A DNA stretch of 64,000 bases from Podarcis erhardii (lineage: Eukaryota): NCBI GenBank assembly GCA_964252035.1, contig OZ176212.1. One strand, written 5' to 3'. Positions 4,078-50,403 of the stretch are shown piece by piece. Every line of letters begins with the position of its first letter. The first letter of the stretch is position 1. A model generated the notes under the pieces. That model worked only from the letters and a program-made list of their open reading frames with translations, was not told where the DNA came from and searched no databases. The translations under genes were made by a program, and so were the position numbers.

Positions 4078-16014
<11,937 letters not shown>

Positions 16015-25800: not shown

Positions 25801-28642
25801 TGTTCCTGAGAAATAACAAGAGAGACCATGCAAGTCAGAATGAGACTTTAAAACAATATTAATATTACAGTTTTATTCATACAGAACAAAAATTATTTTG
25901 TTGTGAAAGGATGTAAATGTGGGAAAATAAAACTTGTTAAAATTTTTGTTTTGGAATTTAATCTTAGAGAGGAAGCTGGGGAAAGGGGAGAGATTCCACC
26001 CCCCTCGACCTGAAATTAGAAATGGTAGAAGAAAAAAATCCAAAGTTGAAACACACCAGCAAGGTCATAAGTCAAAAGAATATACTGCAAAATATGAATC
26101 TTACGATTTGCTTTCAGAATTTAAAAGAGAATTGTGCGAGATAAAGGAAAATGTTGATAAAACAGCTTCTCAAATCCGGGAAAATACTAATTTACTTTCA
26201 GAGGCTGTGGGACAACTTAAAGAGGTGAACATACAAACCACTGAGGTGGGAAAGGTTGAGGTGGTAGGCTCAAGGAAAATACAAGGGAAAGTAAAGGTGA
26301 TCCACAGTAAAAATGGCACCTCGTGTGAATTGATCTGGGAAGATTTTACTTTGATAGAGACAAAACAGAAAGGAAGGGGAAAAGGTATGAGAGGCTACTA
26401 TACATGGTGGCAATGTAAAGTTATTAAGAAGGCCTGGGAGGTAACATATAAAGATCTGAAGAGAATGTGAAAATGACCTTTGTTTAAAAAAATAGAATGA
26501 TTCTGAAAGGTACAGGACTTAATGGATTTACTGGGCAAAATACTTTGTTCCTGCACCTGAGAGTGGATGCCAGGCCAAGACCAGGCCATCCCCATAGAAG
26601 GAAGAAGCCACCGCCAAAGAAGATTGGTAAAATAAATTAGTGAACTATGCAGGACATATTAGACAACTTGAAACCCAAAGGACATTGGTTTTCTCTTTTT
26701 TAAATAAGGGAAATGTTTAAAGCATAACCTTGTAAGCTTTGTGGGTAGGCTTTTACATTAGTTGAACTTTTAAAAGTCACTTGTAATAAGATGAATAAGG
26801 TTTAAATATTGAATTGTTAAGAATATAAGATTTTAAGGACGTGCTTGAATAAGAGTAAAATAGTGGAACCAGGAGGGGAAGTGGAGGGAAGTCTATTAAG
26901 ATTATGGTCTAAATTTTTGAATGTGAATATTATTATTGTTTTTTATTCTGGAATTAATTGCAGGACAACGAAGTGCAAGCTCTTGTGATAACTAAGAGAC
27001 ATATCTTGAACCTGAAAGGATAAATACCCACCATCTATTATGGAATGGTCCAAAGACCCTAAAACTCTTGCTACATTTGAACATACTTTTTAGAAATACA
27101 AATCTCGCTTGGATATCTTTTTGGACAGCATATATTGAGCTATTTGTCTAAACTAAAATGTATTGACAGTTACTGTATCATTAATGTGAGCTGACAGTGT
27201 TTTTTCTTTTTCTTTCCTTTTTCCAAGTATCAAATCACTTAATCAAATAATATTTATATACCAGAGGGAAGGGGTGCTTTTTGGATTTCTACTAAAGGGT
27301 CAGCTCTGCTCCCAAAAATCATCACGTTTCACACTAGTCTTATATTCCTTTGTTTCCAAGAGATTCCTTGCTGTTCTGCTGGTTTTAAAATGCTTTCACT
27401 GAAGGACCAGGTGCGCAGCCTGGGAGTCATTTTGGACTCACAGCTGTCCATGGAGGCGCAGGTCAATTCTGTGTCCAGGGTGGCTGTCTACCAGCTCCAT
27501 CTAGTATGCTGGCTGAGACCCTACCTGCCCGCAGACTGTCTCGCCAGAGTGGTGCATGCTCTAGTTATCTCCTGCTTGGACTACTGCAATGCGCTCTACA
27601 TGGGGCTACCTTTGAAGGTGACCCGGAAACTGCAATTAATCCAGAATGCAGCAGCTAGACTGGTGACTGGGAGTGGCCGCCGGGACCATATAACACCGGT
27701 CCTGAGAGATCTGAATTGGCTCCCAGTACGTTTCCAAGTACAATTCAAAGTGTTGGTGCTAACCTTTAAAGCCCTAAGTGGCCTTGGTCCTGTATACCTG
27801 AAGGAGCGTCTCCACCCCCATCGTTCAGCCCGGACACTAAGATCCAGCGCTGAGGACCTTCTTGCAGTTCCCTCATTGTGAGAGGTGAGGTTACAGGGAA
27901 CCAGACAGAGGGCCTTCTCGGTAGTGGCGCCCGCCCTGTGGAAATAAGCAGCTATCCTATTTTTAAAAGACATCTGAAGGCAGCCCTGTTTAGGGAAGTT
28001 TTTAATTTTTATTTTATTTTATTTATACCCCGCCTTCCCTGGCCAAGACCAGGCTCAGGGCAGCTAACATCAAGTATAAAAACCATTGATTAAAATACAA
28101 CTTAAAAACAGGATTAAAATACAACTTAAAATGCAGCCTCATTTCAGTGGAAGCCCAGATCAAAAACTGTTTGGGGGGAGAAAATGTCAAATCTTCACCA
28201 AGGCCAACCATCCAGACTGGTCCTACGTGGGCCAGAAAAAAGCCAGAGAAGTCCCCAAATAGGGGTTTCATCACAGAAGGAAAAGGAAAGAGGGGGAGGG
28301 GATCAGGCTGATTCCAAGCCAAAGGCCAGGCGGAACAACTCTGTCCTACAGGCCCTGTGGAAAGAAATCAAATCCCGCAGGGCCCTGGTCTCATGAGACA
28401 GAGCGTTCCACTAGGCTGGAGGCCTGGATGAAGCTAATCTTACTTCCTTAGGGCCCGGGACCTCTAGAGTATTGCTATTTATGGACCTTAAGGTCCTCTG
28501 CGGGGCATACCAGGAGAGGCAATCCTGTAGGTATGAGGGTCCTAGGCTGTATTGTTTAATGCTGTACTGTTTTTAACAATTGATTGGGAGCCGCCAGAGT
28601 GGCTGGGGAAACTCAGCCAGATGGGCAGGGTATAAATAATAA

Positions 28643-32586: not shown

Positions 32587-35500
32587 TGTGTGTGTGTTTT
32601 CTGTGGTTGTTTAAAGCACTTGCACAGTCCATGAGGAAGTGCTGCTTGTTGCCTGTCCAGTATGCACTGCTTTCAGTTTGCTTGGATGACCTTGCTTTTT
32701 GGCAGGAAATTGCTGGGACCTTCCTCTGAAGGACATGCAGTCCAGATAACGGGCTGATAGCAGCACATAATTGAAATCAGCTTCTCTTGTTTTAAAAATC
32801 CACTTTGTTTTGTCTTTTATCCCACACTGAGGCCCTTCCATCCATCACTGATGGCTTGCTTAGCTTCAGCCAGATTCCTGCATCGTAGAATTGTAGAGTT
32901 GGAAGGATTCTGTTAGTTATGTTGAGAATTACCTTAATGGAGATCTGTGTCAGCTGCATTTTTATGTGTAGAGAGAAACGGCTTTCACAGAAAGCATGTG
33001 GTTACCTCCTTTATAGGCTCTCTGCCTCTTTCAGAACACATTTTTAAATGTATAAAAGAATGAAAAAGCTATATGCCCATGGAACACTAGCATGTCTCTT
33101 AATTATCAAAATGCAGAGAGTTTTTCATGTAAGGTGGAACATTCATTCGTGTTTTCTGAACACACATTACCTCCGCCACTGTCAGCTTTCTTCTCCATGG
33201 GTAGATCCCTGTCCTGGCTTGAGCCTAAAAACAGGCCTCGCGGGGAGGAGGCGGCCATAAGGGAAGCATCACATCTTCTGAGTGTAGATGATGGTGGCCT
33301 GAGGTGGTGGAACATTTCTGGAATATTTGCCTGGAACTCACCTTGGCACTACTACAGTGCCGTGTTATACCCACTCTGCATTGGTGCGAAGTTGATGGTT
33401 TAGTGGGGCAGCACCTGCACTTTGGAACTCCCTGCCTCTTGAAATCAGGCCAACGTCTTCACTGTATGCTTTTCGGCACCTGCTAAAAATATTCTTTTTT
33501 TAGACAAGCTTAACCAGATGCTTGGAAAGCTGAGGTAATTTTGATCTATTTTAGTATTTTAACTCTTGTACGTTTTAAAGTAGGGCTGTGTACCTACTTT
33601 ATTGTTTTATCTTTTTGTAGACCGCTTTGAGGTTTGTTTGTTTTTTACAGTCAAGTAGTGCATAAATTTTATGAAATAAATAAATAATAAATACTGAGTC
33701 TCTAAACACTTTTAATAAACACTTATCCTTTTTAAAAAGGATTTTTCCTTTATTTATGGTATTTCAGGTTTGTAATTCTTCTCTCACCAGTAGAAAATAG
33801 GACAGTGGGATATTGTTATGCTCCACTTTCTTGAAGGCAGTAAAAACACCATCCTTCTTGGAGGCTTCTAAGTTGCCCCTCTGCAAGCAGCAATTCATTT
33901 TTTCTGCCCTTGCTTGAAGCAGGCCAGTTTAATCACTGGTGTTCTTTGGGCCTTTAACTGCTGTTTTCTTGTGAGTGCAGTTACTTTGTGTGTGTGTGGT
34001 TTGCCCTTTTTTGAGGGGCTTTTTCCTCAGCAGGTTGTTTTTTGTTTGTTATTAGATGGATTTTTGACCTCTGATCACCGTAATGATTCCTACTTGCTTT
34101 CCTCTGTGGCATTTTCTCTCCTCTGCTGTTTGCTAAATTAATTCTACTGAGTCGGCAAATAAAATTGTGTTTTTTATTCTTTGCTTTTTTTAAAAAAATT
34201 GAACAAATGTTAAAAAGAAACAGGGTGGGAAATAATTTGAATTAAAGTCGGACAAGGGTATATTCCTCATAGTGGGTTGCTATGCATTACAGGGCTATGC
34301 TATTATGGAGGGGGCACACGTGACCCTATTGGCTCCACCACCAGCAGTTGCGACAACATTGGGGATGCCTGGTCGCCTGCAGACAGTTGTTAACTTGCCA
34401 CAGGTGACCAGGCAAATTTCCAGCCAAGTAGACTGATTAGTGCCCCTTCTCAATATCTGTCATGTTGCTCACTTTTTATCTTCCAGAAGTCAGTTCTGAT
34501 GATAAAGATTCTGGGATTGATTCCAAGAAGATACCTAAGCATGTTGGAGCTGGGAAATCTTCTAGCTGCTCCGACCAACAAGATTCCGGAGCAGAAGGGC
34601 AGGCTGGCGGATCTGAGAGCGATGGGCAAAGTGCTAAGAAGAGAAGGAGGGAACGACCCCAGAGGGGGAAAGGTAGCAAACCAAACAGGGGGCAGCAGAG
34701 CAGGAGACAGAGAGAACGATCAGGGAGTGAGTCGAAGGAGACAACAGAAGAGGAACAGAGTGACCCTGAAGAGATCAGAAAACATAAGGCAGCAAAAGGC
34801 CAAAGAATCGAATCAGGGAGTGACTCTGAACAAGAGCTGAGCAACTACAAGACCCAGAAAAAGAAAGGGTTTGGCAAAGAACAGAAGCGGACTGAGACAC
34901 TGGGCAAAGGAAAGAACAGAAATATGGATGAGCAAAGGAGAAAAATAGAAGAAGAGTCAGAAGAGGACATGGCGCTGCCCAAGGCACGAAAAATCTGCAA
35001 GGGGGGGAGAATTGATGGAAGTGAGAGTGAAGAGGAGATGAAGGGCAGTGGTGGCAAAAAGGCTCAGAACAGGCCAAGACGAAGATGTTTGAAGGCTCAA
35101 GAGGAGAGTGAGGGTGAGGATGAATCAGAGAGCGATTCAGAGGATGAGCAGCCCAGCAGGCAGAACAAGATGAGGAGAAATAGTAAACGAAGCAGGGAAA
35201 GTGTTAGGGCAGAGGAGCTGGAGAGGGATTCAGACAGTGCCGGAGGCAAAAGTTGGGTGAAGAAGGAAATGCACAAGGCAGCTAGGAGGGCAAGTGAAAA
35301 ATGGAGCCATAACTCAGAGAGCGATTCTGAAGACGGTGGGGAGTTCAAGAGGCAGGCCAGCAAAGGAATGAAAAAGACGCAGAAGAGGAAGGAACTGGAG
35401 CAGGGAAATCATAAGCCTCCCAAGCAAAGCACAAGCAGGGAAGAATCAGAAAGCGAGAGAAATGAGCGTAAGAGCTCAGAGCGAAAAAGAAAAGGGACCA

Positions 35501-38500
35501 AGAAGCCCAGCAGTAGCGAAGATGAATCGTGCAGTGAGGCAGAGGAGATGGAAAGGGGCAAGAGCAAATCCAAGATGTCTGGGAGCAGTGACGAATCAGA
35601 GGATGGGTCAGAAGAGCGGGAAAGTGGAAAGCGGAAAAAGAAAAGAGAGCCTAAAAAGAAGGGCAAGAGTGTGTCTGGGAGTGAATATAGCTCAGAGGAA
35701 GAGCCGCTGAGAAAGGAAGGAGAGAAGTCCCAGGGAAAGCATACCATCGCTGAAAAAGATCTGGAGACGGATTCGGAGGACAGTGGAAGTGAATTGGTGG
35801 GAAGAAAAAAAGGCCTGCAGAAGACTGGGATGCAGAAGCCCCAAAGGAGGGAAGTGAGTTCAAGCTCAGGAGATGAAGATGACCCTCGTTCTTCCAAACG
35901 CAAAGGAAAGGTAAGGAGATCTTTGCTTGGCAATACCAAACATTAATAGCTCAGTACAATTGCGGGCACAGTTTGTCCTCTCCCTCCCTCCCCCCCAGCA
36001 TGTTAAGATATTCCCAAGATTGATATTTACTCAAGTCTTTTGTGTTCTGGGTGGCAGTTCCAGCACCATAATGTGCTGGTCAGTGTATATTCAGCCTGGC
36101 CATGGAGTGTAGTCTGGCACAAGCTTTTGCTCTCAAAAGTAACCTGAATGTCAGGCACGCAGGGAGCACAGGGTTTTGGGATTAATGGCCAGTGGGGGCC
36201 CTCAGTCTAAGCAAGCTGCCCACCTTTACTCTTTCCTTTTGCTTCTATATCGAAAATCAAATTTGTGTGTGTATTTTAACTATGCATCCTGCCTTTCAGG
36301 ATACACATCCTTCCCAGGCATTTCACTTAAGACCATAGGAACAGAGTCTCAGACCATTGGCCCATCTATCTCATTGTCTACATTGACTGGCAGCAGCATC
36401 TGTGTGGAGAGGCTGGGGATTGAGCCTGGGAATCTTCTACGCGAAAAGCTAAGGGCCTTCCACTAGCATGCGGCACCCAAAAGGGAATGTGGCTGGAAAA
36501 GTTTCCCTTCCCTTGCAATAAGGCACAGCGTGGTTATTTTAAAGGAATGGCTGCCTTTTGAAAATGCAGTGTTTTTATGGACCCCATGTCAGGTTTTGCA
36601 ATCTCTTCCCCGTTCTCCGCCTGCTGCAGGACAAAGAGCATCACTCCAGGAAGAATGAGGAGCACTCTTCAATCCGACGCCTGAAACGCTACATCCGGGA
36701 GTGCGGTGCCCATCGAAATTACAAGAAGCTGCTTAGCGGTTGCCACTCCCGCAAAGCTCAGTTGAAGGTGCTCAAAGAGGAGCTGGAAAACCTTGGCCTG
36801 AAGGGTAGGTGCAAGTTGAATGCTTTAGGCAGAAACTGGGAAGGGCAGGGAAAGCCTATTTTCAAGGGAAGGAGAGAGGGAGGGAGAGGCTGGATCCAGG
36901 AACTAGGGGTCAGCAGCACTGTGTGTGCTTGCTTCCAAACCCCACGTTCAGACCAAGGAAGTTGTGGGTGCTGCAACCAGCCTGTAGGAGTTACGCACAC
37001 ACAGCCCATTTTCAAAGTCAATGGCTGATCTTGTGTGATTATGGAAAGAGCTATTGGGAGTCTCGTGACCACACACACTGCCTTCACTACTGTAATTCCA
37101 ATTGGGGGTCCTCTGGTTCAGAAATTTAAGCAAGTGTCTCCAGAGACTATCTTTTACAGCCTCAAAAGCCAGATTCTTTGCATGATCCAGAAATCCGTCA
37201 GATGAAGCTGTCTTTTAATGTGTTGGACGACTGTTCCTTCTGGCTCAGCATTGGCTGCCAGTGACTCTCCCATACTTTAGGCAGGGGACTTTTCCAGCCC
37301 TAACTGGCGATGCCAAGGGTTGAAGCGTGGACCTTCTGCATGCAGAGCATATGTTCTGTCACTGCACTAAAGCCCTTCTCTAGTTTCTCCCACCCATCAA
37401 GGTTTCTTTGGTTTGTGAGACTTGAAGAGAACTTGCTTTCCTCACTGCTACATCCCCACGTGAATGAAAAGCTGCCCCTGTTTGAATTTGTACCCATCAG
37501 GCTCTTTTAAAGGCACCGTACCTCAGGGAACAGTGTTTCCGTGTGCTGCGCTGGTGCTGGCTCACCAGAGCAGCTTTGTCACGCTGGCCACGTGACCCAG
37601 AAGTGTCTCCGGACAGCGCTGGCTCCCAGCCTCTTAAGTGAGATGAGCACACAACCCTAGAGTCGGACACGACTGGCCCGTACGGGCAGGGGTACCTTTA
37701 CCTTTACCTTTTACCTCAGGGAAAGGGACACGGGTGGCGCTGTGGGTTAAACCACAGAGCCTAGGACTTGCTGATCAGAAGGTCGGCAGTTCGAATCCCT
37801 GTGACGGGGTGAGCTCCCTTTGCTCGGTCCCTGCTCCTGCCAACCTAGCAGTTTGAAAGCACATCAAAGTGCAAGTAGATAAATAGGTACTGCTCCAGTG
37901 AGAAGGTAAACAGCGTTTCCGTGTGCTGCTCTGGTTCACCAGAAGCAGCTTAGTCATGCTGGCCACATGACTGGGAAGCTGTACGCCGGCTCCCTTGGCC
38001 AATAAAGCGAGTTGAGCGCCGCAACCCCAGAGTTGGTCACGACTGGACCTAAGGGTTAGGGGTTCCTTTACCTTTACCTCAGGGAAACTACAGCAACATC
38101 TTTTTCAGAGTGTGGCTATTTTTCAGTCTTATCCTTCTGAGCACAGGGGGACACTTGCCCACGTGTCTCACTTCTTGGCCTGTGTTTTCCCTCCCCTTTT
38201 CTCAGGGGCACCATCTCTGGCCAAGTGCAAGGCCTTGAAGAAGAAGCGGGAAGTGGCCGCCGAAATTGCTTCGCTCGATCTCTGCAACATCATTGCTACA
38301 CAAGGTAAAGGTGGGAGGAGCCAAAGAGAAGGGGCATGGCTAGTGGTAGATAGGAAGAAACCTGGAAACTTTAACTTCCTGATTTCTGCCTTTGTTTTGC
38401 ATGTGTATTTGAGCCTACCCCACACAGGGTGATAACCGGTTATGTCACACTGAGAGCAGGCCCACTGATATCAGTGGATTTAAAATACTAAAGCCCATTT

Positions 38501-39173
38501 GATTTCAGTGCTCCCACTGTGCAATTAACATTTAATATTGCGCATCGTCTGGTGGGAAAACTGGAAATCAGACGTGGGGCTTGTGATATGCTTCTTCCCA
38601 ATCTTGGATATTCTACTTTTCTAACTGATTGTCGTTTACTTCCAGTCTTGTTTTTGCGTCTTATTTATGACCAAAGGATGCACGTCAACCATTCCTTTTG
38701 GTGACAAAGTAAATACTACAGATATTCCAGTTTCTTTTTTCTTTTTCTTTTGCATGCATGCAGGGGCGGGGAGGATAAAGGGCACGGGTGTAAGAAAAAA
38801 GATGGTAGACTTCTAGGGGTGTCGTTTAGATGCAAGGGGAGTGAATGCTGTAAGAGGGGAGAAGCCAAGAGGGGTTTTTGCTTGAAGGCATGTGCTTCAC
38901 ATCTTGTGGTTGTGAGCACAGAGCAAAGTGGGCTTGGTCCATGGAGCCCTACAAGTGTCCTTAGAGCCGCAGCTGTTGCCTCTTCATGCGAAACTCTTTT
39001 CTGTCTCTCTCCACCCTTTTATTCACACAGGCCGCCCAAGGCGTCAGAACGTCTGGAGTCTCTACAGCAAGCCTAAGCAGCACAGCTCCCCAGAGGATTC
39101 ACCCGTCCACAGTCCGATTAGGGACTGGTCCCACCTTAAAGGTGTCATCAGTTCAGATGGAGAAAGCAATTGA
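30193..39173 (+). CDS. HIRIP3: HIRA-interacting protein 3 (730 aa); exons 30193-30272, 31908-32028, 32180-32330, 34487-35910, 36630-36804, 38206-38304, 39031-39173
   Basis: GT-AG introns; 2193 nt in frame. N-terminus KPDLSTLTNAIIRKKYL, large S/E/K/R low-complexity exon, C-terminal IRRLKRYIRECGAHRNYKKLL, EIASLDLCNIIATQGRPRR and DWSHLKGVISSDGESN match recalled human HIRIP3. AATAAA at 39790-39795. Confidence 0.95.
31031..31347 (+). mobile_element. Sauria SINE with 12-bp TSD (TACACACATAGG)
   Basis: TSD copies at 31019-31030 and 31348-31359; same head and ACCTTT tail as other copies. Confidence 0.88.
32546..32596. repeat. Compound (GT)n(GA)n(GT)n microsatellite
   Basis: Direct reading. Confidence 0.9.
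33345..33690 (+). mobile_element. L2-type LINE 3' end remnant
   Basis: Homologous to 8360-8715; ends in (AAAT)n. Confidence 0.6.
37531..38074 (+). mobile_element. Tandem Sauria SINEs: 5'-truncated copy (37531-37711) and full copy (37724-38074)
   Basis: Two ACCTTT tails; TACCTCAGGGAA occurs three times (37519, 37712, 38075). Confidence 0.88.
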
Positions 39174-40509: not shown

Positions 40510-43500
40510 CTCTAGCATATTGGGAATGGAGCTTCTGTGGCTGCGTAGCTCTTCCCCGTGACATGATCCCACACTGCTGGGGGGTGCGAGTGCTGTGGGC
40601 TGCAGTGACTTCACCCATTTGGCTACAGACTAGGCTTATTCACACCAATATACCTCTACAGTCTAGGAATCCGCCACAGGGAAGTTGCTCCAGATCCTTT
40701 AACATTGCCTCACTTGCCCAGACTTCTCATCCCGTCACGGCAACATGCTTTGAATGCATACAAAAAATGGCAGTGGAGAGTTTGTTGCAATAGCTACAAA
40801 AACTTTAAAAATAGCAAGGTCCTAATAAAGTATATGGGTGTGGCATGTGCTGATGAAATACTCTGCAAGATTGGGGTTTCCTGGGACAGCATCTTTTGGT
40901 GCCTTACACAAAGTGAGATCGTTCATCATTCAGTCCAGTTTGGATTATTTTGAAAGGAAGCCTACCAAAATCCCCTGTTTCCTCGTCTGTGCCTCCTAGG
41001 AACCAGCTTTATAGCAGGGCAGAAAGTTGGTGCATTTGGCCCAGGGTTGTGCACTGGCTCTTCTGGGTCTTAGGGAGGATTCTTTCCCATCACCAGATCC
41101 TTTTAACTAGCCAAAGATTAAAACTAGGCTCTTATGCATACGAAACATATGCTCTATCATGTAGCTGTGTGGTCCCTCTCTCTCACATGAATGCAAAAAC
41201 AAAACAAAACACCATTTTATCAAACTCTAAAACCAATAGGCAATAACACTGCAGGGAGCGGCTCATTTACATTTTTATATTTATTAAGATCTTTTGTCAT
41301 TGAACTGAAGCAATAAGAAACCCTAACTTTAATTAATATAGATTTCTTTTTCTTTTAATCCTCTAGTATTTACAAAGTATACAGAACTGCAGAGGTTTTA
41401 TGTACATATTCACTTGAAAGGAAGACCAGCTTATGCTCCATCCTCTGTAACAATTTCCTCCTCAGACAGCAGTAGTTCTGTTTCTGAGCCCAATTCAGAG
41501 ATCGGAGGACAATATACACTAGATGTCTCTACACTGACCAGTCCTGTGTTCAGTCTTAGAAGATAGGACTCTTTCTTTTGTGTAAATTCACCTATTAAGA
41601 TGCCAGGCCTTTGGGGAGATTTAAATGCTCTTCTCTAACTTGGGGGTTCAGTGACTAATTTTGAAGCAGGAATATGTAGTTGTATGGGTAAAAAGTTATC
41701 TTTCCAGAGTCACTTTCAGCTCAAAATCCTTCCTGTTTCATGCAAGACTATCCTTAAATAGCCCAAACCTTTGGGCTTTGACACCTGTACTTGAAAACAT
41801 ACAGAGTGAGGGGTGTTTGAGTTTTGCTCAAAAGCAACATAGTTTTCCCTCAGTCTTTTCGATAGATGAATGTTCAGCTGCTAAGAGGTTTGACATAAGG
41901 AACCACTGTACTAGCGTTAGTCTACAAAAGAAAACCTAATATGGCGTGTATATGTTTAGAATTCCTTAACCAAAAGAATTACACTCCTACATTTTCATTG
42001 TCTATAATAGATAACAATGTTGACACAAATGAATACACTGTCCACTTCAATTTATTCCTGGTGAGTATGGTATGTGTGGGGCAGTCGTCCACCTTCAAAT
42101 ATGAGAGAGGGTCTGAGTTGCCAGTTGCTTATCTATGCTTCAAGACATTTCGAATGTAGTAGAAATTTTGCAGTGAGAAAAGAGGAATTCAAAACCCCCA
42201 CCCTCACCTACACACACACACACACACACACTCTTTATAAATTAGCCTTGAAATATTCAGCCAGTAAGCCATCCTTTTCTCAGATACCACACAGGCCTAC
42301 TTTAGCTATGAGCTGCTAGAATTTTCTAGCCAGGCTTGACTGATAGGCAAGGTTCTGGGGGGAAATCGCTCTGAAAAGTCAGTGCAGGCTAAAACTTCCA
42401 AAAGTGAGGGTGAAATAAGTTCCTTGTTCTGGAGAGAAAAGCACTGCTGTGGAAGTCCTAGTTAACCACACCTTTTACAATACTATAATAAAAACCGTAC
42501 TAATAGAAACGAAACAACAACCAAGGGGTTGCTGAGTGTTAAGGCCATCCATCCAACAGGGCAATAACTTTGCTAGGGAAACTTCTTTAAAGGGGTCTCT
42601 CTATCTGGAACATCCTTATTTAAAATGACCAAATTTGTGCTTTCCAATAATTTCTTTAAAGCACTTGGAAACCTGTACCTCCAAAGTTAATTTATATGGC
42701 AGAACACCCTATGTAACTTCTAAAACATATTCCATTTGGAATATTTTACTCCCCACTACCTCACAGCTCCTTATTGTAGTCTGGATAACTCTAGGCCTTG
42801 AACATCCCAAGCTGTTCCCTTGACTTTCAACTATTCAAATTAATTTGAAATAAAACGGCTAAATTTTAACTGAACACACACCTTTCACTCTGTGGTATAG
42901 TCAGAAAATCTTCAAATAGAACCCAGTTCCCCTTCACTAGCATACTTAACTGCGGATCCATCTCCTCAGATGTTAAATTTACCCCCATAACTATTGTTAT
43001 CCTATCATTTTGTCCTCTCTGTGGCATTAAAAGCTTTTAAAAACACATGCACACATTCTACTGAGAGGGGGTTTTTGTCCAGAAAACGTTGCTCTCAACT
43101 TGTGATTAGAAAATGGTTTGCCCTTTCCCACACAATGCCAGAGCCCCACCATATTGTTCATTATTCCTGAGGAAGCGAGGTAACAGGCTTTTAATGCTGA
43201 ACGGTAATACCCCAGTGTCAGAAATAGATATAGTTTTTTACTTTCTCCCCTCCCCACTGGACAATATACCTTTCTTTGTGCTTTTTGCCCTCCACAGCCC
43301 TGTACTGAGGTAATATGAGCATTAATCCTCTGTTCCCCACACGAGTGGATTTTCCTGGGTTGGAACAGTATTATACTGAAACAGCAGTATTCATTATACC
43401 CATGGGCTGCTGGGTTGTAGCCTGCACAGTGAAAATTATTGTACTGAAGACTCCTTCTGCTTTCTGGAGCTGAAATGTACCATCTGCCCTTGGAAGTTTG

Positions 43501-44087
43501 ATCATCTTCAGCTTCTTCACTTCTGCCTTCTATTGGCAAAGCAGTCCTTAAACAATGTGTGCCTTGGGAGCAATGTTAACATTAACGCCTGTCATCACTG
43601 CTAAGATTTCACTCGGGGGGGGGGGGGAGTTTATTGTGTTTGTTAAAACCAAAGTAAACCCAGGCCCTACTGCCGGGAAGTAATTCTGAAGCTGTCTTCA
43701 ATAAATTATTTTTTTTCCCTTTCCTCCTCACAAAGGGAGGGTCAATTTATTCAGATCTTGAAGCTCTGCTTTAGATAAATATATTTACTGCCTATATTCT
43801 GCTATTAACCATCTTCTCTTAATACAAGCAAAACTATATAAGTTCTTAGTAACATTTGACATGGCGGAACCAGTCAATCACACTGAAATGGCCAAGCAAC
43901 TCAAGGTCTTTTTCATGATCTAATCATATTGCAAGGTCTCCCAAAAAAAGACTATTGTAACAGCATTTTCTTACCAAAGTCCACCATGCCGGAAGTTCTT
44001 AGTAGTGGTCCGAACATGGTGGAACTTTTTGATCCTAAATTCAAGCAGCCCGCGTCACCCAACCACATTCCCAAAGTTGCCCAGCGT

Positions 44088-44708
44088 CTATCTTAAGTTC
44101 CACAGGGGGACCAGCCCCCGGGTCTCTTTCTCGTAGATATCTGGGACCAAGCCAATGGGTGAGGGCACCATCTTGACGGTGTTCTTGCCAAACAGCTTGC
44201 GTTCGTACTCAATGAGTTGTCTCCAGAAGCCGACATTGGGCCTTACGACGGGTCGCCTGCTCTTCACCCACTCATGGGCATCCAAGAGACTCAACCGGTG
44301 GTATTTCATCAAGTAGGCGATGCAGAGGGAGGCAGATCTACTGACCCCTGCCACGCAATGGACAAGGGTTCTTCCGTTCTTCTTCCCCGTCTGGTGTATC
44401 CTGTCGGCCACAGAGTCAAAGTACAAGGACAGTGGAGCGTGAGGGAGGTCGGGGACAGGGACCTTGACGTAGTCAATATCTGGCCAGTTGGCATTGGGGA
44501 TTTCCATGGTGGCATTCACGACGCAAGTCACTGCCCTGGAGTAGACCATGTGCCTGTTGGACGCAGCATTGCCGGAGGAGAGGTAGAGGCAAGGGGAGAT
44601 CTGAGCGATGCCTCCTAAGACGGACAGAGTGTTCCCAGCAGCAGGGGCAGGCTTGGCCACGGAAGGAGGCGGAGAACGGCGGAAGAAGCCGTGGTTCCGA
44701 AAATTCAT
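44088..44708 (-). CDS. Atypical dual-specificity phosphatase, DUSP14-like (206 aa, single coding exon; an in-frame upstream ATG at 44729 would add 7 aa)
   Basis: Intact ORF with PTP loop VHCVAGVSRSA, acid loop VPDLPHAP, GGIAQI start of the DSP domain, RPNVGFWRQLIEYE and a DUSP14/18/21-type tail. GCCATG Kozak context. Acceptor (pyrimidine tract + TAG) before 44734. Symbol withheld because orthology is unresolved. Confidence 0.92.
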   Translation of the reverse strand: MNFRNHGFFRRSPPPSVAKPAPAAGNTLSVLGGIAQISPCLYLSSGNAASNRHMVYSRAVTCVVNATMEIPNANWPDIDYVKVPVPDLPHAPLSLYFDSVADRIHQTGKKNGRTLVHCVAGVSRSASLCIAYLMKYHRLSLLDAHEWVKSRRPVVRPNVGFWRQLIEYERKLFGKNTVKMVPSPIGLVPDIYEKETRGLVPLWNLR

Positions 44709-45195
44709 GGCGGATGGTTCAGCGTACATAACAGCTAGGGGGGAAGAAAGAGGTGATAAACTTCAAAGGACTGGTGCACTTAAACAAACAAACAAGTTAA
44801 AAGATGCATGATTCCATTCTTTCACTGAGCAGCTGCTACTGAGTCTGGCACGCTCCCAGAGAGCAAAAGTCCCCATGCCCTGATTCTGCCTCCTCCTTTT
44901 CTGCTATCCCCCCTATTCTAACAAATACAGGAACAAGCATGGGATTTGGGGAGGCATGGGGTGAGGCAGAGGTGGGAAATGAACTTGCAATTTTTTTAAG
45001 CAGGTGGAAGAGATGGATAGGTTATTTGTGGCACTGAAACAGGAGAGAAAGGTGGGTGGATGAGCAGACAGAGCAAAGTGAGGTGATAAGGGGAGCAAAG
45101 GGAGTGAACGGGATGCAAAGATGGGATGTGGAGGGAGAGAGATCAAAGAGTTCTGCTTCCGTGCAAAGCCAAACGTCTCCCAATAGCCTACCTAC

Positions 45196-45420
45196 CTCGG
45201 TCATTCCGTAGTAGCTGCTGTTCTCATCTCAGGGTTAGGTTGTGGGGAGGGAGAAAGGGAAGGAGCTAGAAACTGTGATGCTGCAGGAATGATGCGACGA
45301 TGGTGGGAAAATGGAGGAATAGGGAGTAGGAGTGGACAGCTTCTTAAAGGGCCAGCGGACTCTTTACCAGCCCATCCCCATTCGACCCACCCTGCCTAAC
45401 CCATGCCCATTCCTAATTGG
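45196..45420 (-). promoter_or_regulatory. Candidate 5' non-coding exon (donor after 45196) of the DUSP14-like gene, with possible proximal promoter
   Basis: Minus strand GAG|GTAGGT donor at 45196/45195; candidate acceptor CCTGCAG at 45281; CCAAT (45416-45420) and TTTAAG (45343-45348) upstream. Could be an internal or a first exon. Confidence 0.5.
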
Positions 45421-47345
45421 CTATCTGCACCCCACCCTCTTTGCCATCACAGCCATGGGCTCAAAGCATGATTCATACTGAATGATTATTGGTGCAAAGG
45501 GAGGGTGACAGTTTTGCATCAGAGGTTCCCTCCTCCAGTATAGGAGGTGGGGCATGTTTGTAATAATCCCCCATAGTTTTTGCTTCTTCCCCCAAATGTT
45601 TATCCTCTGTTCAACAATCTGGCCCCATCTCACCTCCACAGTAACTACCACCAAGAACCAACTGAAAGACCACTCCCTCACTATTTTTTTTTTTAAATAG
45701 CAGGGCATTGTGGTCCTAACTAGATATTTCTGGTTTGTCCTGAAATTTGAGATGTCTGGGCAACATATATTTGACATCACGGGGTCTACTAGGCTGTGAG
45801 TATACAAAATGCTTCATTGATGCATTCTGCAAGGATTGTAGTGGGTCCATTTGGAACGCTACATCCTGGAGAATAATGCTGGGTCTTGCTGGGGAATTCA
45901 AAAATATACTAATTTTCCTATTATAGGGCTCAACACATAGTTCAGATATGCCACCAAGCACAATTATAACTTTTCACTCCAATTTACTTTAACTCACACA
46001 GAGAGGTTCTCGTTCTATTTCACTTCCTAACTTAAGTAGAGTTCATTCAACCGTTCTTGTGGGGTGTTTCAGATGCCACTACCCTTGAAAACTAGATGAG
46101 GATATGGGTCCAGGGAGGGCATATACTCAAGATCTTTTAACACAGATCAGTTGGAACTCGTGCTTTAAACTGATCTTCAATGATCAAAATCAAGAGAAAT
46201 CCTGGATTTTGAAAGGCTACCCCCTCCCCCCCCCATGCTTCCATCTTCTTAGGTAGCAGGTCGTGTATTTGTATGTTAATGCTGAGGGGAAAAGGTAAGG
46301 AGGTCTTTTGAATTAACAAGCAGAATGTGTTCTATGCCTGCTTCCTCTTCACTCAAGTTGTGAGTTCCCCCGCAACCAGCTTTGCTCCCTGTTTAGATGT
46401 AACACGAGTCCAGTCCGAACAGCTCTTGAGGGATCCTCACTTTGGCTGACAGTCTCCATCTATTTTATCTCTTCATCCTATGAGGTCCACTCACCTAAAA
46501 ATCTCTCATTCTCAACCTCCTTTGTTTTTAGACATGACTATGATATTGAATCACATTCCTTTCAAACCTCAAAATGCCTAAACCTCTAGCCCCCTCTCTC
46601 TATTGCCTGCCACCAATAAACCCACACCCCTGGGCCCTTAACCTCTGGCTCTGCAACCCATAAAATGCACAATTTCCATGTGTGTATCTAATCCCTTAGC
46701 CTAGTGTTTTAACTCTTTTAGCTAACACAGGCAGACATGAATGGCTTTACCACTAGCAAACCCCAGTATTGTTTAATACCTAAACTGATTAAGAGTTCTG
46801 GGAAATGTGAATGCTAGCACCCTATTTTGTGATCATTGTCTTTTGCTGGCCCAATAAAGGTACCTAATATTGATTTTGGAATTAAGCGTTGCAGCATCTA
46901 ACACTGATTATGTCAATACCACTCCCTGCAAATGTTCGTCCTCAGTCCAACCCATCCTTCAGAATCATACTGGAGAGCACAGCACAGCCGCCCTGTGCTT
47001 GTGTGTGTGGAGTCATGCCTCTCAATAAGGGTGTGGTAGTTATTACGGGTCGACTCGCTTTAAATCTTACATTTATCTTGCTCCCATGTCACCACCAAAT
47101 CTGATCCCATGTGCTCCTCCTCTCAGTACCCCAAATTATTTGCCTCAAACTCCCCAACCGCTCCCGCTATTCAAATAAACACACATCTAAGAACATCCCC
47201 AGCTGCCATTCGACCTTCCCTCCCCACCCACTCAACTTCAGAAATCATGACCCTTCTGCACAAATAGCAACACCAAAATCAGATGTCCCCTCTACTCCAA
47301 ACAACCCCAAACTTTGAAAAAGGAAATGTATGTTTTTTTAATTAC

Positions 47346-49460
47346 CAGGTAGTGCTGTCTTTCAATGGAAGCTCTGAGAACAGCTCTCAAAAACTCTCCC
47401 CACGAAAGAAACCCTCTCTGGCCCACCTAAATGGTTTTGAGGAAGGAGGCTAACGGGCGAGAAGACGTCTGAATGTCTCTGTTTCCGATCGATCTCGTAA
47501 TCCCCTTCTTCTCTGCTTCCAAACAGATCTCCCTTTACAGATGTATCTATAATCTATTTTAATAAATACTATATATCTCTATATAGATTTTTCTCCCCTG
47601 GCCTTGCTTCTTCTCTCCCAGCGCCTCTTTCCTTCTGGGTGGGGATCAGGAGTTTCCTTCCCTGGCTCTCCCCCAGCATTGCCTATATACCACCCTTGCC
47701 ACCCCCCCCCTCCTGGACCACTCAAGCGTTGGAGGTAACAAAAGGTTGCCATGGCGACGGGATGCGGGGGGGGGGGAGGATGCTGTCGTCAGAGCCAGTG
47801 ACACAAGCCGGGGCTCGCGAAGGGGGAGGAGAGGAGGAGGAGGAGGAGGGACTGAAAACCCACGGATTTTCCCTTCCCGCCTCCGCTTCCGGGGTAGATT
47901 CTTCTCCCTCCGCTGCAAACTGTGGAGCGTAAACCCCCTCCTCCAGCTGCCTTGGAGACTTCAGTGTTACAAAATTAACCTCAAGATTAGGCAAGGTTAC
48001 TGATAAGGGGGAGCCTTATCAGGAAGTCCAAAAAGGCTCCATTCCAGGAAATAAGAGGAGGGCAACATTATCTCCCCCACTATTTTCTGTGCGTGGAAAA
48101 ATATTCAAGCAGCAGGATGGGACACTGTCCTCTCTCTAATCACGGGCTGCGGCATTCACACGTACACATAGAAGTACCAATTGGGAACTCGTCTTCGGGT
48201 CACCGTTTTTGGGGAAGCTCACGCCACTGCGGAGAGCCTCCCTCCACCACCACCCCAGTTCTGTGCGTCACAATCAGCCCATCATCCTCGCCCCACTCTC
48301 ACGCTTCCACGTTCCTGTGAGCGAGGAAGGTGCGGGGAACACGCGTGAGTCACAGAGAAGGTGCCAACCGAGGTTCCCGTCCCTGGAGGAGAAGCGATTG
48401 CAAAGCTGTTGGGAGAAAGGGAGGGCGCGGGCTCCAGAGGTGGGATAAGAAAGGCCCGGGGTGGCGGCGGCGGGGGGGAGGTGTTGTTGGGAAGGCTACA
48501 AGTTAGGATCGAGCGGCATCCTGTGCCAGGACACGGCAATAAATTAACTCCGTGGATGTGGGACACTGAGGACAGGTATGGAAAGGTGCTGCCGCCTTAA
48601 AATTAATATCCTCCCGCCCCAGGGATTTATTTTCCTTGAAGGAAGAAGGAGGCCTTTAAAGCTCCGTGTTCAGGGGCAGTGTATCTGCAAATTGCAGCCC
48701 TTGGAAGCGTGCAACAGCAATCGAGGGCGTTTGCCTTCGTACCTTGGTCGTGGGCTTCCGGGAGACATCTGGCCCGTCGCTGTAGGAGACGCGACGCAAA
48801 ACCAGAAGGACTTTGCTCTGACCCAGCAGGGCCGTTTTTAATGTTCAGCTGCGTTTCTCTTTTTAAGCCACGCCTCCTCCAAGCACACTTTGTCACGGGA
48901 AGAAGCCAATCTGTCCCTGCTTAACAATGTGCAAGAGGCTTGGTTCCATTGCCCTAGAAGCTGGTGCGTTGCAGGCAGGTTCGCGTTCGATGCTGAGTAA
49001 GGATTTCTTGCCTTTATTTAATACATTTATAAACCGCCTTTCCAGGGGAAACGCTTCAGGAAACAATGTGCAAATACAAAATTGCCCCATCGTCAAGCAG
49101 TGCAAAACTTATTTAAAACATCTGAGAGCCACAATGATCTTAAAAGATCAATAGGGATCCGCCTGCAGTTCTGTTACGTGCTCAAACGTCACGGATAGTA
49201 ATCCTAAAGTTTGCATCGCCCGCTTTAGTGAACACAAGGGAATACAATACAGTACTGTATACCCAAACGGAGGCAAAAATCATGTCCTTGTATCTAGCTT
49301 ATTACGGTAAGCGTGACTCAGCGTATCGCTTTGTTCGTCTCACCTCCTATGCGGAAATCGTCAAAGCGTTACCGTATTTAGCGGGTTAAAGCCCGCCTCG
49401 CCTCAAAATAATAGTGCGCATTACCGTAACTACTGAGTTGTGTGCCACTTTGTAAATAAC
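47346..49460. promoter_or_regulatory. CpG island with RFX X-box and ETS motif; probable distal promoter/first exon of the DUSP14-like gene on the - strand
   Basis: CpG-rich stretch with no coding exon assigned. GTTGCCATGGCGAC at 47745-47758; CCGGAAGC on - strand near 47885; minus-strand donor CTG|GTAATT at 47346/47345. Confidence 0.55.
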
Positions 49461-50403
49461 GCATAAGATGCTGCCATAGTAAAGGATTCGAAACATTGCA
49501 GGATGCAATGGAGTAAACAGATTCCCTGGAGATATGAAAACAGTACCACAATTGCGGGCATATATAGCTCCATGTGAAAAAGGATATACAGTAAGTGCTT
49601 AAGAGAGGAATAAAATATGTATCTAGGACATCAACATTCTAAGGCTGGGGGTTTTTTTATGGCTGTATTCTGTGACATGTCATTGACACATTATTAGTGC
49701 ATTAGTTAAAGTAACTGCCTGATAGTCATTGGTTGTGGATTTTATACTGGACTGTCCATACATCATCGACTTTATTAGCTGTTCCGTGATGCTTCCTCAG
49801 TGTCACTGCATCGTTGCACTTGTTTTGCTCTGTAGCACAACAAAAGTAATATTTTTTTAAAAGTGGAAGATTTGCGTTCTAAAAAGCTACAGGATTTCAG
49901 GAGGAAATCACAGCCCACGCACTGATTGGGAAGGGAGCAGTATATCCGCACCAAAACTTTTGCAGGCACAAACAATATTGGAAGCAGGATTGGGAATAGC
50001 CACCCAATACCTCACGAGAGCAGAAATAATCAGGGACGCACGATAAAAGAATCCGGAAGGACCCTTAGTGAGGCAAACACCAGAGTCAAAAGGTGAAAGG
50101 GGGAGCAACTATGAACCAACAGCTTTGGGGGCACCGTGCAGGCAGGCTGCCTGTCACACACAACTCTGTTCTCCAGCCAAGGACCGTGGAGGAGGAAAGG
50201 AAGACCAGAGACACCATCATCTGCCCATCTCTCACGGCCTAATGACAGGACTGCTCCCATGTGTAGATGGGGACATTGCAGCAAGAGTGGCTTTTCTTAT
50301 CGCTTCATGACCAATTGCACATGCCAGCTAAAATTCCCTCTTTTACGCAGCTGCAGCTGCTTTACAAACTTATGAGTTTATAGATACAGTATATAGATAT
50401 ATA

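Follow-up and report, generated by a model that had tools for sequence, protein, structure and literature searches.

A DUSP14-like phosphatase gene beside HIRIP3 in the lizard Podarcis erhardii, assigned to an orthology group sister to DUSP14

The closest described relative of the gene reported here is DUSP14 (MKP6, human 17q12), a small phosphatase with the DSPc fold and without a MAP-kinase-binding domain, encoded by one coding exon behind 5'UTR introns. ERK, JNK, p38 and TAB1 are its substrates (PMC6219832). All of these structural features recur in the lizard gene, whose product has about 73% identity to DUSP14 over the catalytic domain and the same Asp/Cys/Arg set; the two genes differ in that they belong to separate clades that split before the divergence of cartilaginous and bony vertebrates, and in that the DUSP14 locus adjoins SYNRG whereas the lizard gene adjoins HIRIP3. 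DUSP18 and its retrogene DUSP21 are members of the same subfamily but lie across the deepest vertebrate split in our tree. The name "DUSP14-like" is shared by the rodent Dusp14l (e.g. of Chionomys), which, as it nests inside mammalian DUSP14, is a recent rodent duplicate with no relation to the clade described here. The "dusp14" of Xenopus, Rana and Hyla, on the other hand, is of the same orthology group as the lizard gene and differs from it in name alone.

In many genomes annotation pipelines have already predicted the gene under the name "DUSP14-like", so that what is new is its recognition as a separate orthology group, for which we use the name DUSP14L. A full-text literature search returned no paper treating DUSP14-like as a group of its own, the term "Dusp14l" being used there for the rodent duplicate; the preliminary description had supposed the gene to be auto-labelled and otherwise uncharacterised, and both the labels in the records and the literature search bear this out. 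DUSP14L does not amount to a new kind of system.

The gene and its predicted product

The gene lies in a 64,000-nucleotide stretch of contig OZ176212.1 of Podarcis erhardii (the window), and the following features were assigned to it.

41.3-49.1 kb, minus strand: the whole DUSP14-like gene
44088-44708, minus strand: coding sequence of the DUSP14-like phosphatase, 206 residues plus the TAG stop, taking the second in-frame ATG as start
41260-44734, minus strand: last exon, comprising a 5-nt leader, the whole coding sequence and ~2.8 kb of 3'UTR; the 3' end is approximate
44735-47345, minus strand: 5'UTR intron, shorter form, with the joint 44734 to 47346 bounded by CT..AC (GT..AG on the minus strand), in runs X5 (depth 185) and X10
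47346-47621, minus strand: alternative first exon 1b, putatively non-coding, joined to 44734 in X5 record 19 and X10 record 13
48743-49107, minus strand: alternative first exon 1a, putatively non-coding, in the CpG-rich stretch, with the joint 44734 to 48743 (CT..AC) in X6 and X5
48000-49600, no strand assigned: CpG-rich promoter region, CpG observed/expected 0.67-1.16, GC up to 0.60
41266-41426, minus strand: conserved block at the end of the 3'UTR, 83% identical in DNA to the gecko locus and at an equal distance from the stop codon

An uninterrupted open reading frame of 213 residues occupies 44088-44729 on the minus strand, beginning at the earlier in-frame ATG at 44729 and ending in a TAG stop at 44088-44090. 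The second in-frame ATG, which gives the 206-residue form, opens the motif MNFRNHGFFRRSPPP, and the coelacanth and lungfish proteins begin there as well. Residues 48-178 match the Pfam DSPc profile over its full length (positions 1-133 of 133) with an E-value of 1.5e-35 and 122.4 bits against a cut-off of 33.5. This is the sole Pfam match above cut-off in the protein of 206 or 213 residues, as two weak, overlapping matches to phosphatase families both fall below their own cut-offs, and Pfam found neither a rhodanese-type MAP-kinase-binding domain nor any other non-phosphatase domain. The nearest solved structure is that of human DUSP14 (2wgp; E 1.4e-82, residues 37-204), with DUSP18 (E 3e-67) and DUSP21 (E 2e-59) ranked second and third.

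The P-loop, HCVAGVSRS, spans residues 124-132 in the 213-residue numbering and contains Cys125 and Arg131, and the general acid Asp94 is present in the segment PVPDLPH; all three residues align with the same residues of human DUSP14. Judged by its domain, predicted active site and small size, the window protein is an atypical dual-specificity phosphatase of the DUSP14/18/21 subfamily. As in the DUSP14 family, Cys125 would attack the substrate phosphate to form a thiophosphate intermediate, with Arg131 expected to hold the phosphate and Asp94 to protonate the leaving group. Because the catalytic domain is 73% identical to that of human DUSP14 and the Asp/Cys/Arg set is intact, DUSP14L is predicted to dephosphorylate both phospho-Tyr and phospho-Ser/Thr, and by analogy with DUSP14 its substrates are probably MAP kinases (ERK, JNK, p38) or proteins of the TAB1 type. 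The conserved N-terminal RRSPPP motif could, speculatively, be a phosphorylation or docking site. In the shark 14-like protein the RSPPP motif is followed by a poly-proline run, and in white shark and sawfish the reading frame stays open ahead of the 14-like start, through long proline/serine-rich simple repeats (L005:8399-10000 and L008:13503-14000).

Transcript structure was read from contigs of four small sequencing runs (X5, X6 and X10 among them), drawn from two sister organisms and four studies, which aligned to 43600-49500 with 95-99% identity. Contig depth is 20-277 over 43600-44735, coverage breaks off exactly at 44734, and the intron is almost without coverage. The splice acceptor lies just upstream of 44734, 5 nt before the first ATG. 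Contigs of 3.4 kb in X5 and X10 span 43600-44735 and continue about 2.25-2.29 kb further 3', and one 1045-nt contig in X6 spans both sides of the joint 44734 to 48743. Coverage confined to exons together with GT..AG joints identifies spliced transcripts and is hard to explain otherwise, even with the runs taken to be RNA by guess only. The CpG observed/expected ratio of the intron is 0.05-0.4, vs 0.67-1.16 in 48000-49600. The upstream, putatively non-coding exons and CpG promoter proposed in the preliminary description are thus real, the exons being joined to the coding exon by GT..AG splices from 47346 and 48743. In gecko, isoform X1 of the 14-like gene gains an in-frame start from an upstream exon. 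Low-depth contigs from three runs also cover 45199-45367, inside the 5'UTR intron; the joint 44736 to 45199 occurs in X10 only, has non-canonical ends (AG..TC) and carries one extra letter, and these contigs may stem from a minor alternative exon, from unspliced RNA or from an artefact of assembly.

Near the 3' end the minus strand has an AATAAA signal at 41280-41285. Outside the coding exon and the adjoining 3'UTR, the block at 41266-41426 is the only part of the gene conserved with gecko, and it may be a conserved 3'UTR regulatory element. In gecko, turtle and ray the length of the 14-like gene is 4.3-4.9 kb.

The coding sequence is under strong purifying selection among tetrapods, with dN/dS of 0.003-0.07. 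The ratio is 0.003 between the window gene and its gecko orthologue (dS 0.81), 0.074 with turtle and 0.037 with caecilian, and 0.18-0.23 with cartilaginous fish, for which synonymous sites are saturated.

Phylogenetic position, distribution and names

A maximum likelihood tree was computed from 84 rows and 203 columns under LG+C20+F+G4 (PMSF) and rooted on tunicates and molluscs; lamprey and hagfish were not sampled, and no cyclostome protein occurs among the 120 matches listed in the protein search. The tree contains four vertebrate clades, given here with bootstrap/SH-aLRT support.

DUSP14 clade: 35 rows, 100/96, with chimaera and basking shark at its base
14-like clade: 23 rows, 99/94, comprising chimaera, sharks, rays, lungfish, coelacanth, frogs, caecilian, turtles, squamates and the window gene
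DUSP18/21 clade: 16 rows, 97/89, comprising teleosts, sharks and amniotes
Fourth clade: 5 rows, 100/98, comprising coelacanth, lungfish and caecilians

DUSP14 and the 14-like clade are paired at 97/89 and DUSP18/21 and the fourth clade at 97/80, which gives the shape ((DUSP14, 14-like), (DUSP18/21, fourth clade)) with cartilaginous fish inside both DUSP14 and the 14-like clade. In AU tests on groups named after the tree had been seen, uniting squamate 14-like and lepidosaur DUSP14 proteins as one clade was rejected with a delta lnL of 148.9 (p 3e-69), and uniting bony-vertebrate DUSP14 and 14-like proteins to the exclusion of cartilaginous fish was rejected with a delta lnL of 42.2 (p 5e-4), the Callorhinchus 14-like sequence forming a long branch. 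The first result speaks against a squamate-specific duplicate and the second against a duplication confined to bony vertebrates. Members of the fourth clade are variously labelled "18-like" or "14-like" (P0069, P0075, P0079, P0089 and P0090; locus L009:10001-10588). The fourth-clade gene of Rhinatrema adjoins a gene of the TMEM230/134 family, and no paralogous block could be identified from that neighbour.

Shared residues support the 14-like clade independently of the tree. Every 14-like protein, including those of cartilaginous fish, ends in W-x-[FLY]-R, whereas DUSP14 ends in W-G-I. Further characters of the clade are Arg17, Leu100, Pro93 immediately before the general acid, where DUSP14 has Ala, and Val126 in the P-loop, again in place of Ala; Val126 is probably ancestral, because it is shared with DUSP18. 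Tree and characters together place the window gene in a distinct predicted orthology group, DUSP14L, and not in DUSP14 itself. Orthology to true DUSP14 was considered for the window gene and rejected, as the gene falls in a separate clade (99/94) at a locus flanked by HIRIP3 and a SEZ6-family gene, not SYNRG.

In a word search with cluster listings, the proteins nearest to the window protein were entries named "dual specificity protein phosphatase 14-like" from squamates, turtles, amphibians, coelacanth and lungfish. The squamates comprise geckos, lacertids, skinks, anguids, iguanians, snakes and an amphisbaenian, and the amphibians comprise caecilians, salamanders and frogs, i.e. all three orders. 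"14-like" entries of shark, ray and chimaera rank next, and these species' true DUSP14 proteins rank below their 14-like ones, at about 58-68% identity to the window protein. Retention in squamates, as first proposed, was therefore found, within a far wider distribution that takes in turtles, all amphibian orders, lungfish, coelacanth and cartilaginous fish. The match list, which is drawn from predicted proteomes and reaches down to tunicate and mollusc proteins, contains no protein of a mammal, bird, crocodilian or ray-finned fish above DUSP14 level among its 120 matches. Bird orthologues of genes in this GC-rich region are often absent from assemblies, and loss of old duplicate genes is common in mammals. 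Both DUSP14 and the 14-like gene are present in Eublepharis, Latimeria, Protopterus, Callorhinchus, Rhinatrema, Pelobates, Spea and Discoglossus, and a true DUSP14 is present in the lacertid Zootoca as well.

Gene names in frogs are at odds with this placement. Xenopus tropicalis "dusp14" (NP_001072193.1) and the X. laevis genes dusp14.L and LOC495963 fall in the anuran 14-like clade (support 100), and so does the "DUSP14" of Rana, Hyla, Ranitomeya and others (P0216, P0208, P0204, P0203, P0220 and P0215). Among frogs, only Ascaphus, Discoglossus, Pelobates, Pelodytes, Spea and Leptobrachium were found to carry true DUSP14; in Xenopus, Rana, Hyla and Ranitomeya the word search and cluster listings yielded none, and because no true DUSP14 showed in these frogs, pipelines named their 14-like gene DUSP14. 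Pipid and neobatrachian frogs seem to have lost true DUSP14 and to have kept its sister gene under the DUSP14 name, and Xenopus dusp14 is likely to represent hidden paralogy in a model organism.

Genomic neighbourhood

Four other genes were recognised in the window.

9288-16011, plus strand: double-C2-domain gene, DOC2A by position, with six exon reading frames matching Pfam C2
29345-29659, minus strand: first coding exon of INO80E (Pfam PF24237 INO80E, E 5.8e-5 on the partial exon), head-to-head with HIRIP3
34462-39173, plus strand: HIRIP3, large acidic exon and C-terminal exons, matched by word search to HIRA-interacting protein 3 (best match Podarcis muralis, 92%)
about 60500 to beyond 63346, minus strand: 3' exons of a SEZ6-family gene, namely three Sushi exons, a transmembrane exon and an NPxY tail

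The matches in the first of these genes fall in two series of C2 profile positions, and the gene therefore encodes two C2 domains. No Pfam match was obtained in the HIRIP3 exons. Two open reading frames in the INO80E region, at 27390-27881 (163 residues) and 25934-26470 (178 residues), resemble fragments of retrotransposon proteins and not host exons. The order and orientations of the double-C2 gene, INO80E and HIRIP3 are presumably those of human 16p11.2, to which the DUSP14L block would correspond.

The Sushi exons of the SEZ6-family gene match Pfam Sushi with E-values of 2e-7 to 1e-11, and its tail exon matches the gecko locus. Pfam gave only Sushi for this gene, and a word search with one Sushi exon led to unnamed fragments and clusters without useful names, so that its identification as SEZ6L2 is by position only; some of the fragment clusters occur across hundreds of metagenome contigs and may represent stray human DNA. 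Across the interval 39173-60500 the SEZ6-family gene lies on the opposite strand to HIRIP3, and we take human SEZ6L2 and HIRIP3 to lie on one strand, separated by ASPHD1, KCTD13, TMEM219 and TAOK2.

In each of lizard, gecko, turtle and frog, HIRIP3 and the 14-like gene form a tail-to-tail pair, and the gene on the other side of the 14-like gene differs. In the gecko Eublepharis it is flanked by HIRIP3 and a 955-residue CUB/Sushi gene, in the turtle Chrysemys by HIRIP3 and PAGR1 (Pfam PAXIP1_C), which we take to be another 16p11.2 gene, and in the frog Anomaloglossus by HIRIP3 and a SAP/DCR (DPPA2/4-like) gene. Since the upstream neighbour varies by lineage, the tail-to-tail pair with HIRIP3 is the invariant feature, and adjacency to a SEZ6-family gene is a feature of squamates. 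In a dozen further squamates the longest contigs bearing the 14-like protein and HIRIP3 are equal in size, and in Lerista the locus tags of the two genes are five apart. The true DUSP14 of Eublepharis is on a different chromosome, convergent with SYNRG, an adjacency which we assume to be that of human 17q12.

The preliminary description had placed an intact, catalytically complete phosphatase between HIRIP3 and SEZ6L2 and had called it the SEZ6L2-linked member of its family. The intact reading frame, the complete active site and HIRIP3 all stand, as does a SEZ6-family neighbour in squamates; the name SEZ6L2 is positional, and linkage to it does not extend to turtle or frog, where HIRIP3 is what is conserved. 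The synteny comparison suggested at that stage came out as HIRIP3 adjoining the gene in both of these lineages.

For caecilian, white shark and sawfish, no informative gene was found within the 10-kb flanks of the 14-like gene. In chimaera the 14-like gene is located 2.5 kb upstream of a gene with DED and TRADD-like_N domains, which is not of 16p11.2 type (L002:13130-16477), and the 14-like gene may have moved in the chimaera lineage.

Origin of the gene and what it means

We conclude, with a probability of roughly 0.8, that the window contains a functional, transcribed phosphatase gene of the DUSP14L group, sister to DUSP14, which arose by a duplication before the jawed-vertebrate split, most likely in 2R. 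The duplication that separated DUSP14 and DUSP14L would have followed the split from tunicates and preceded that between cartilaginous and bony vertebrates; the most likely event is one of the two rounds of genome duplication early in vertebrate history. The timing expected of an ohnologue is what the tree gives, with cartilaginous fish in both clades and tunicates outside. A 2R origin is likely and fits the symmetric four-clade tree. It would also agree with the human map if the block of SEZ6 (17q11), TAOK1, NUFIP2 and DUSP14 (17q12) on 17q and that of SEZ6L and DUSP18 on 22q (22q12 for both) are paralogous to 16p11.2, where no DUSP is known at the position of SEZ6L2; the neighbour of the chimaera copy does not fit such a block.

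The one alternative of some weight, which we nevertheless consider unlikely, is that DUSP14L arose before the jawed-vertebrate radiation as an old small-scale duplicate of DUSP14, segmental or transposed, and not by whole-genome duplication. The tree dates the event and is silent on its mechanism, the chimaera copy adjoins an unrelated gene, and the upstream neighbour varies between squamate, turtle and frog, all of which such an origin would accommodate. A 2R origin, by contrast, predicts the symmetric arrangement ((14, 14L), (18, fourth clade)) with its splits between the tunicates and the jawed-vertebrate crown, and members of the block (the SEZ6 family, TAOK and NUFIP2) presumably have paralogues near human DUSP14.

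Two other readings carry almost no weight. A single coding exon, with DUSP14 as the best named match, might suggest a relocated true DUSP14, a recent squamate duplicate or a processed retrocopy. Such an origin is highly improbable given the AU rejection at p 3e-69, and the tree and the search for a second gene, both put forward in the preliminary description as checks, speak with one voice: the gene falls outside true DUSP14, a forced union costs 148.9 lnL units, and a separate DUSP14 is found in Zootoca and, beside SYNRG on another chromosome, in gecko. The claim that the gene is not a recent processed copy also held, in view of two 5'UTR introns spliced with GT..AG, a gene structure and HIRIP3 neighbour that are alike in turtle and frog, and orthologues reaching to sharks and other cartilaginous fish. 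Nor is it at all credible that the gene is a decaying or non-functional copy with a reading frame kept open by chance. The catalytic residues are intact, dN/dS is 0.003 against gecko at a dS of 0.81 and 0.04-0.07 against caecilian and turtle, and contigs of the exon occur at depths of 20-277 in four runs from four studies.

Beyond the origin of DUSP14L itself, we lean slightly towards a jawed-vertebrate ancestor with four 2R-derived genes of the DUSP14/18 type, namely DUSP14, DUSP14L, DUSP18 and the fourth clade, followed by reciprocal losses in different lineages. Mammals would then have kept only two of the four lineages, and the fourth clade would persist in coelacanth, lungfish and caecilians, where alone it is now seen. 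Mammals, archosaurs and ray-finned fish would each have lost DUSP14L independently, and pipid and neobatrachian frogs would have lost true DUSP14 instead.

The placement proposed here defines a strongly conserved orthology group, hidden until now under the label "DUSP14-like", in a well-studied subfamily of phosphatases acting as regulators of MAP kinases and of immune signalling. Orthology tables in which frog "dusp14" is matched with human DUSP14 are apparently in error, a point relevant to work in Xenopus that models the human gene. The region of reptile genomes that corresponds to the human 16p11.2 copy-number region contains DUSP14L, a gene not found in mammals among the matches listed. 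Reciprocal loss, if true, would imply that DUSP14 and DUSP14L can replace each other, and the pattern of losses offers a natural test of the functional overlap between the two.
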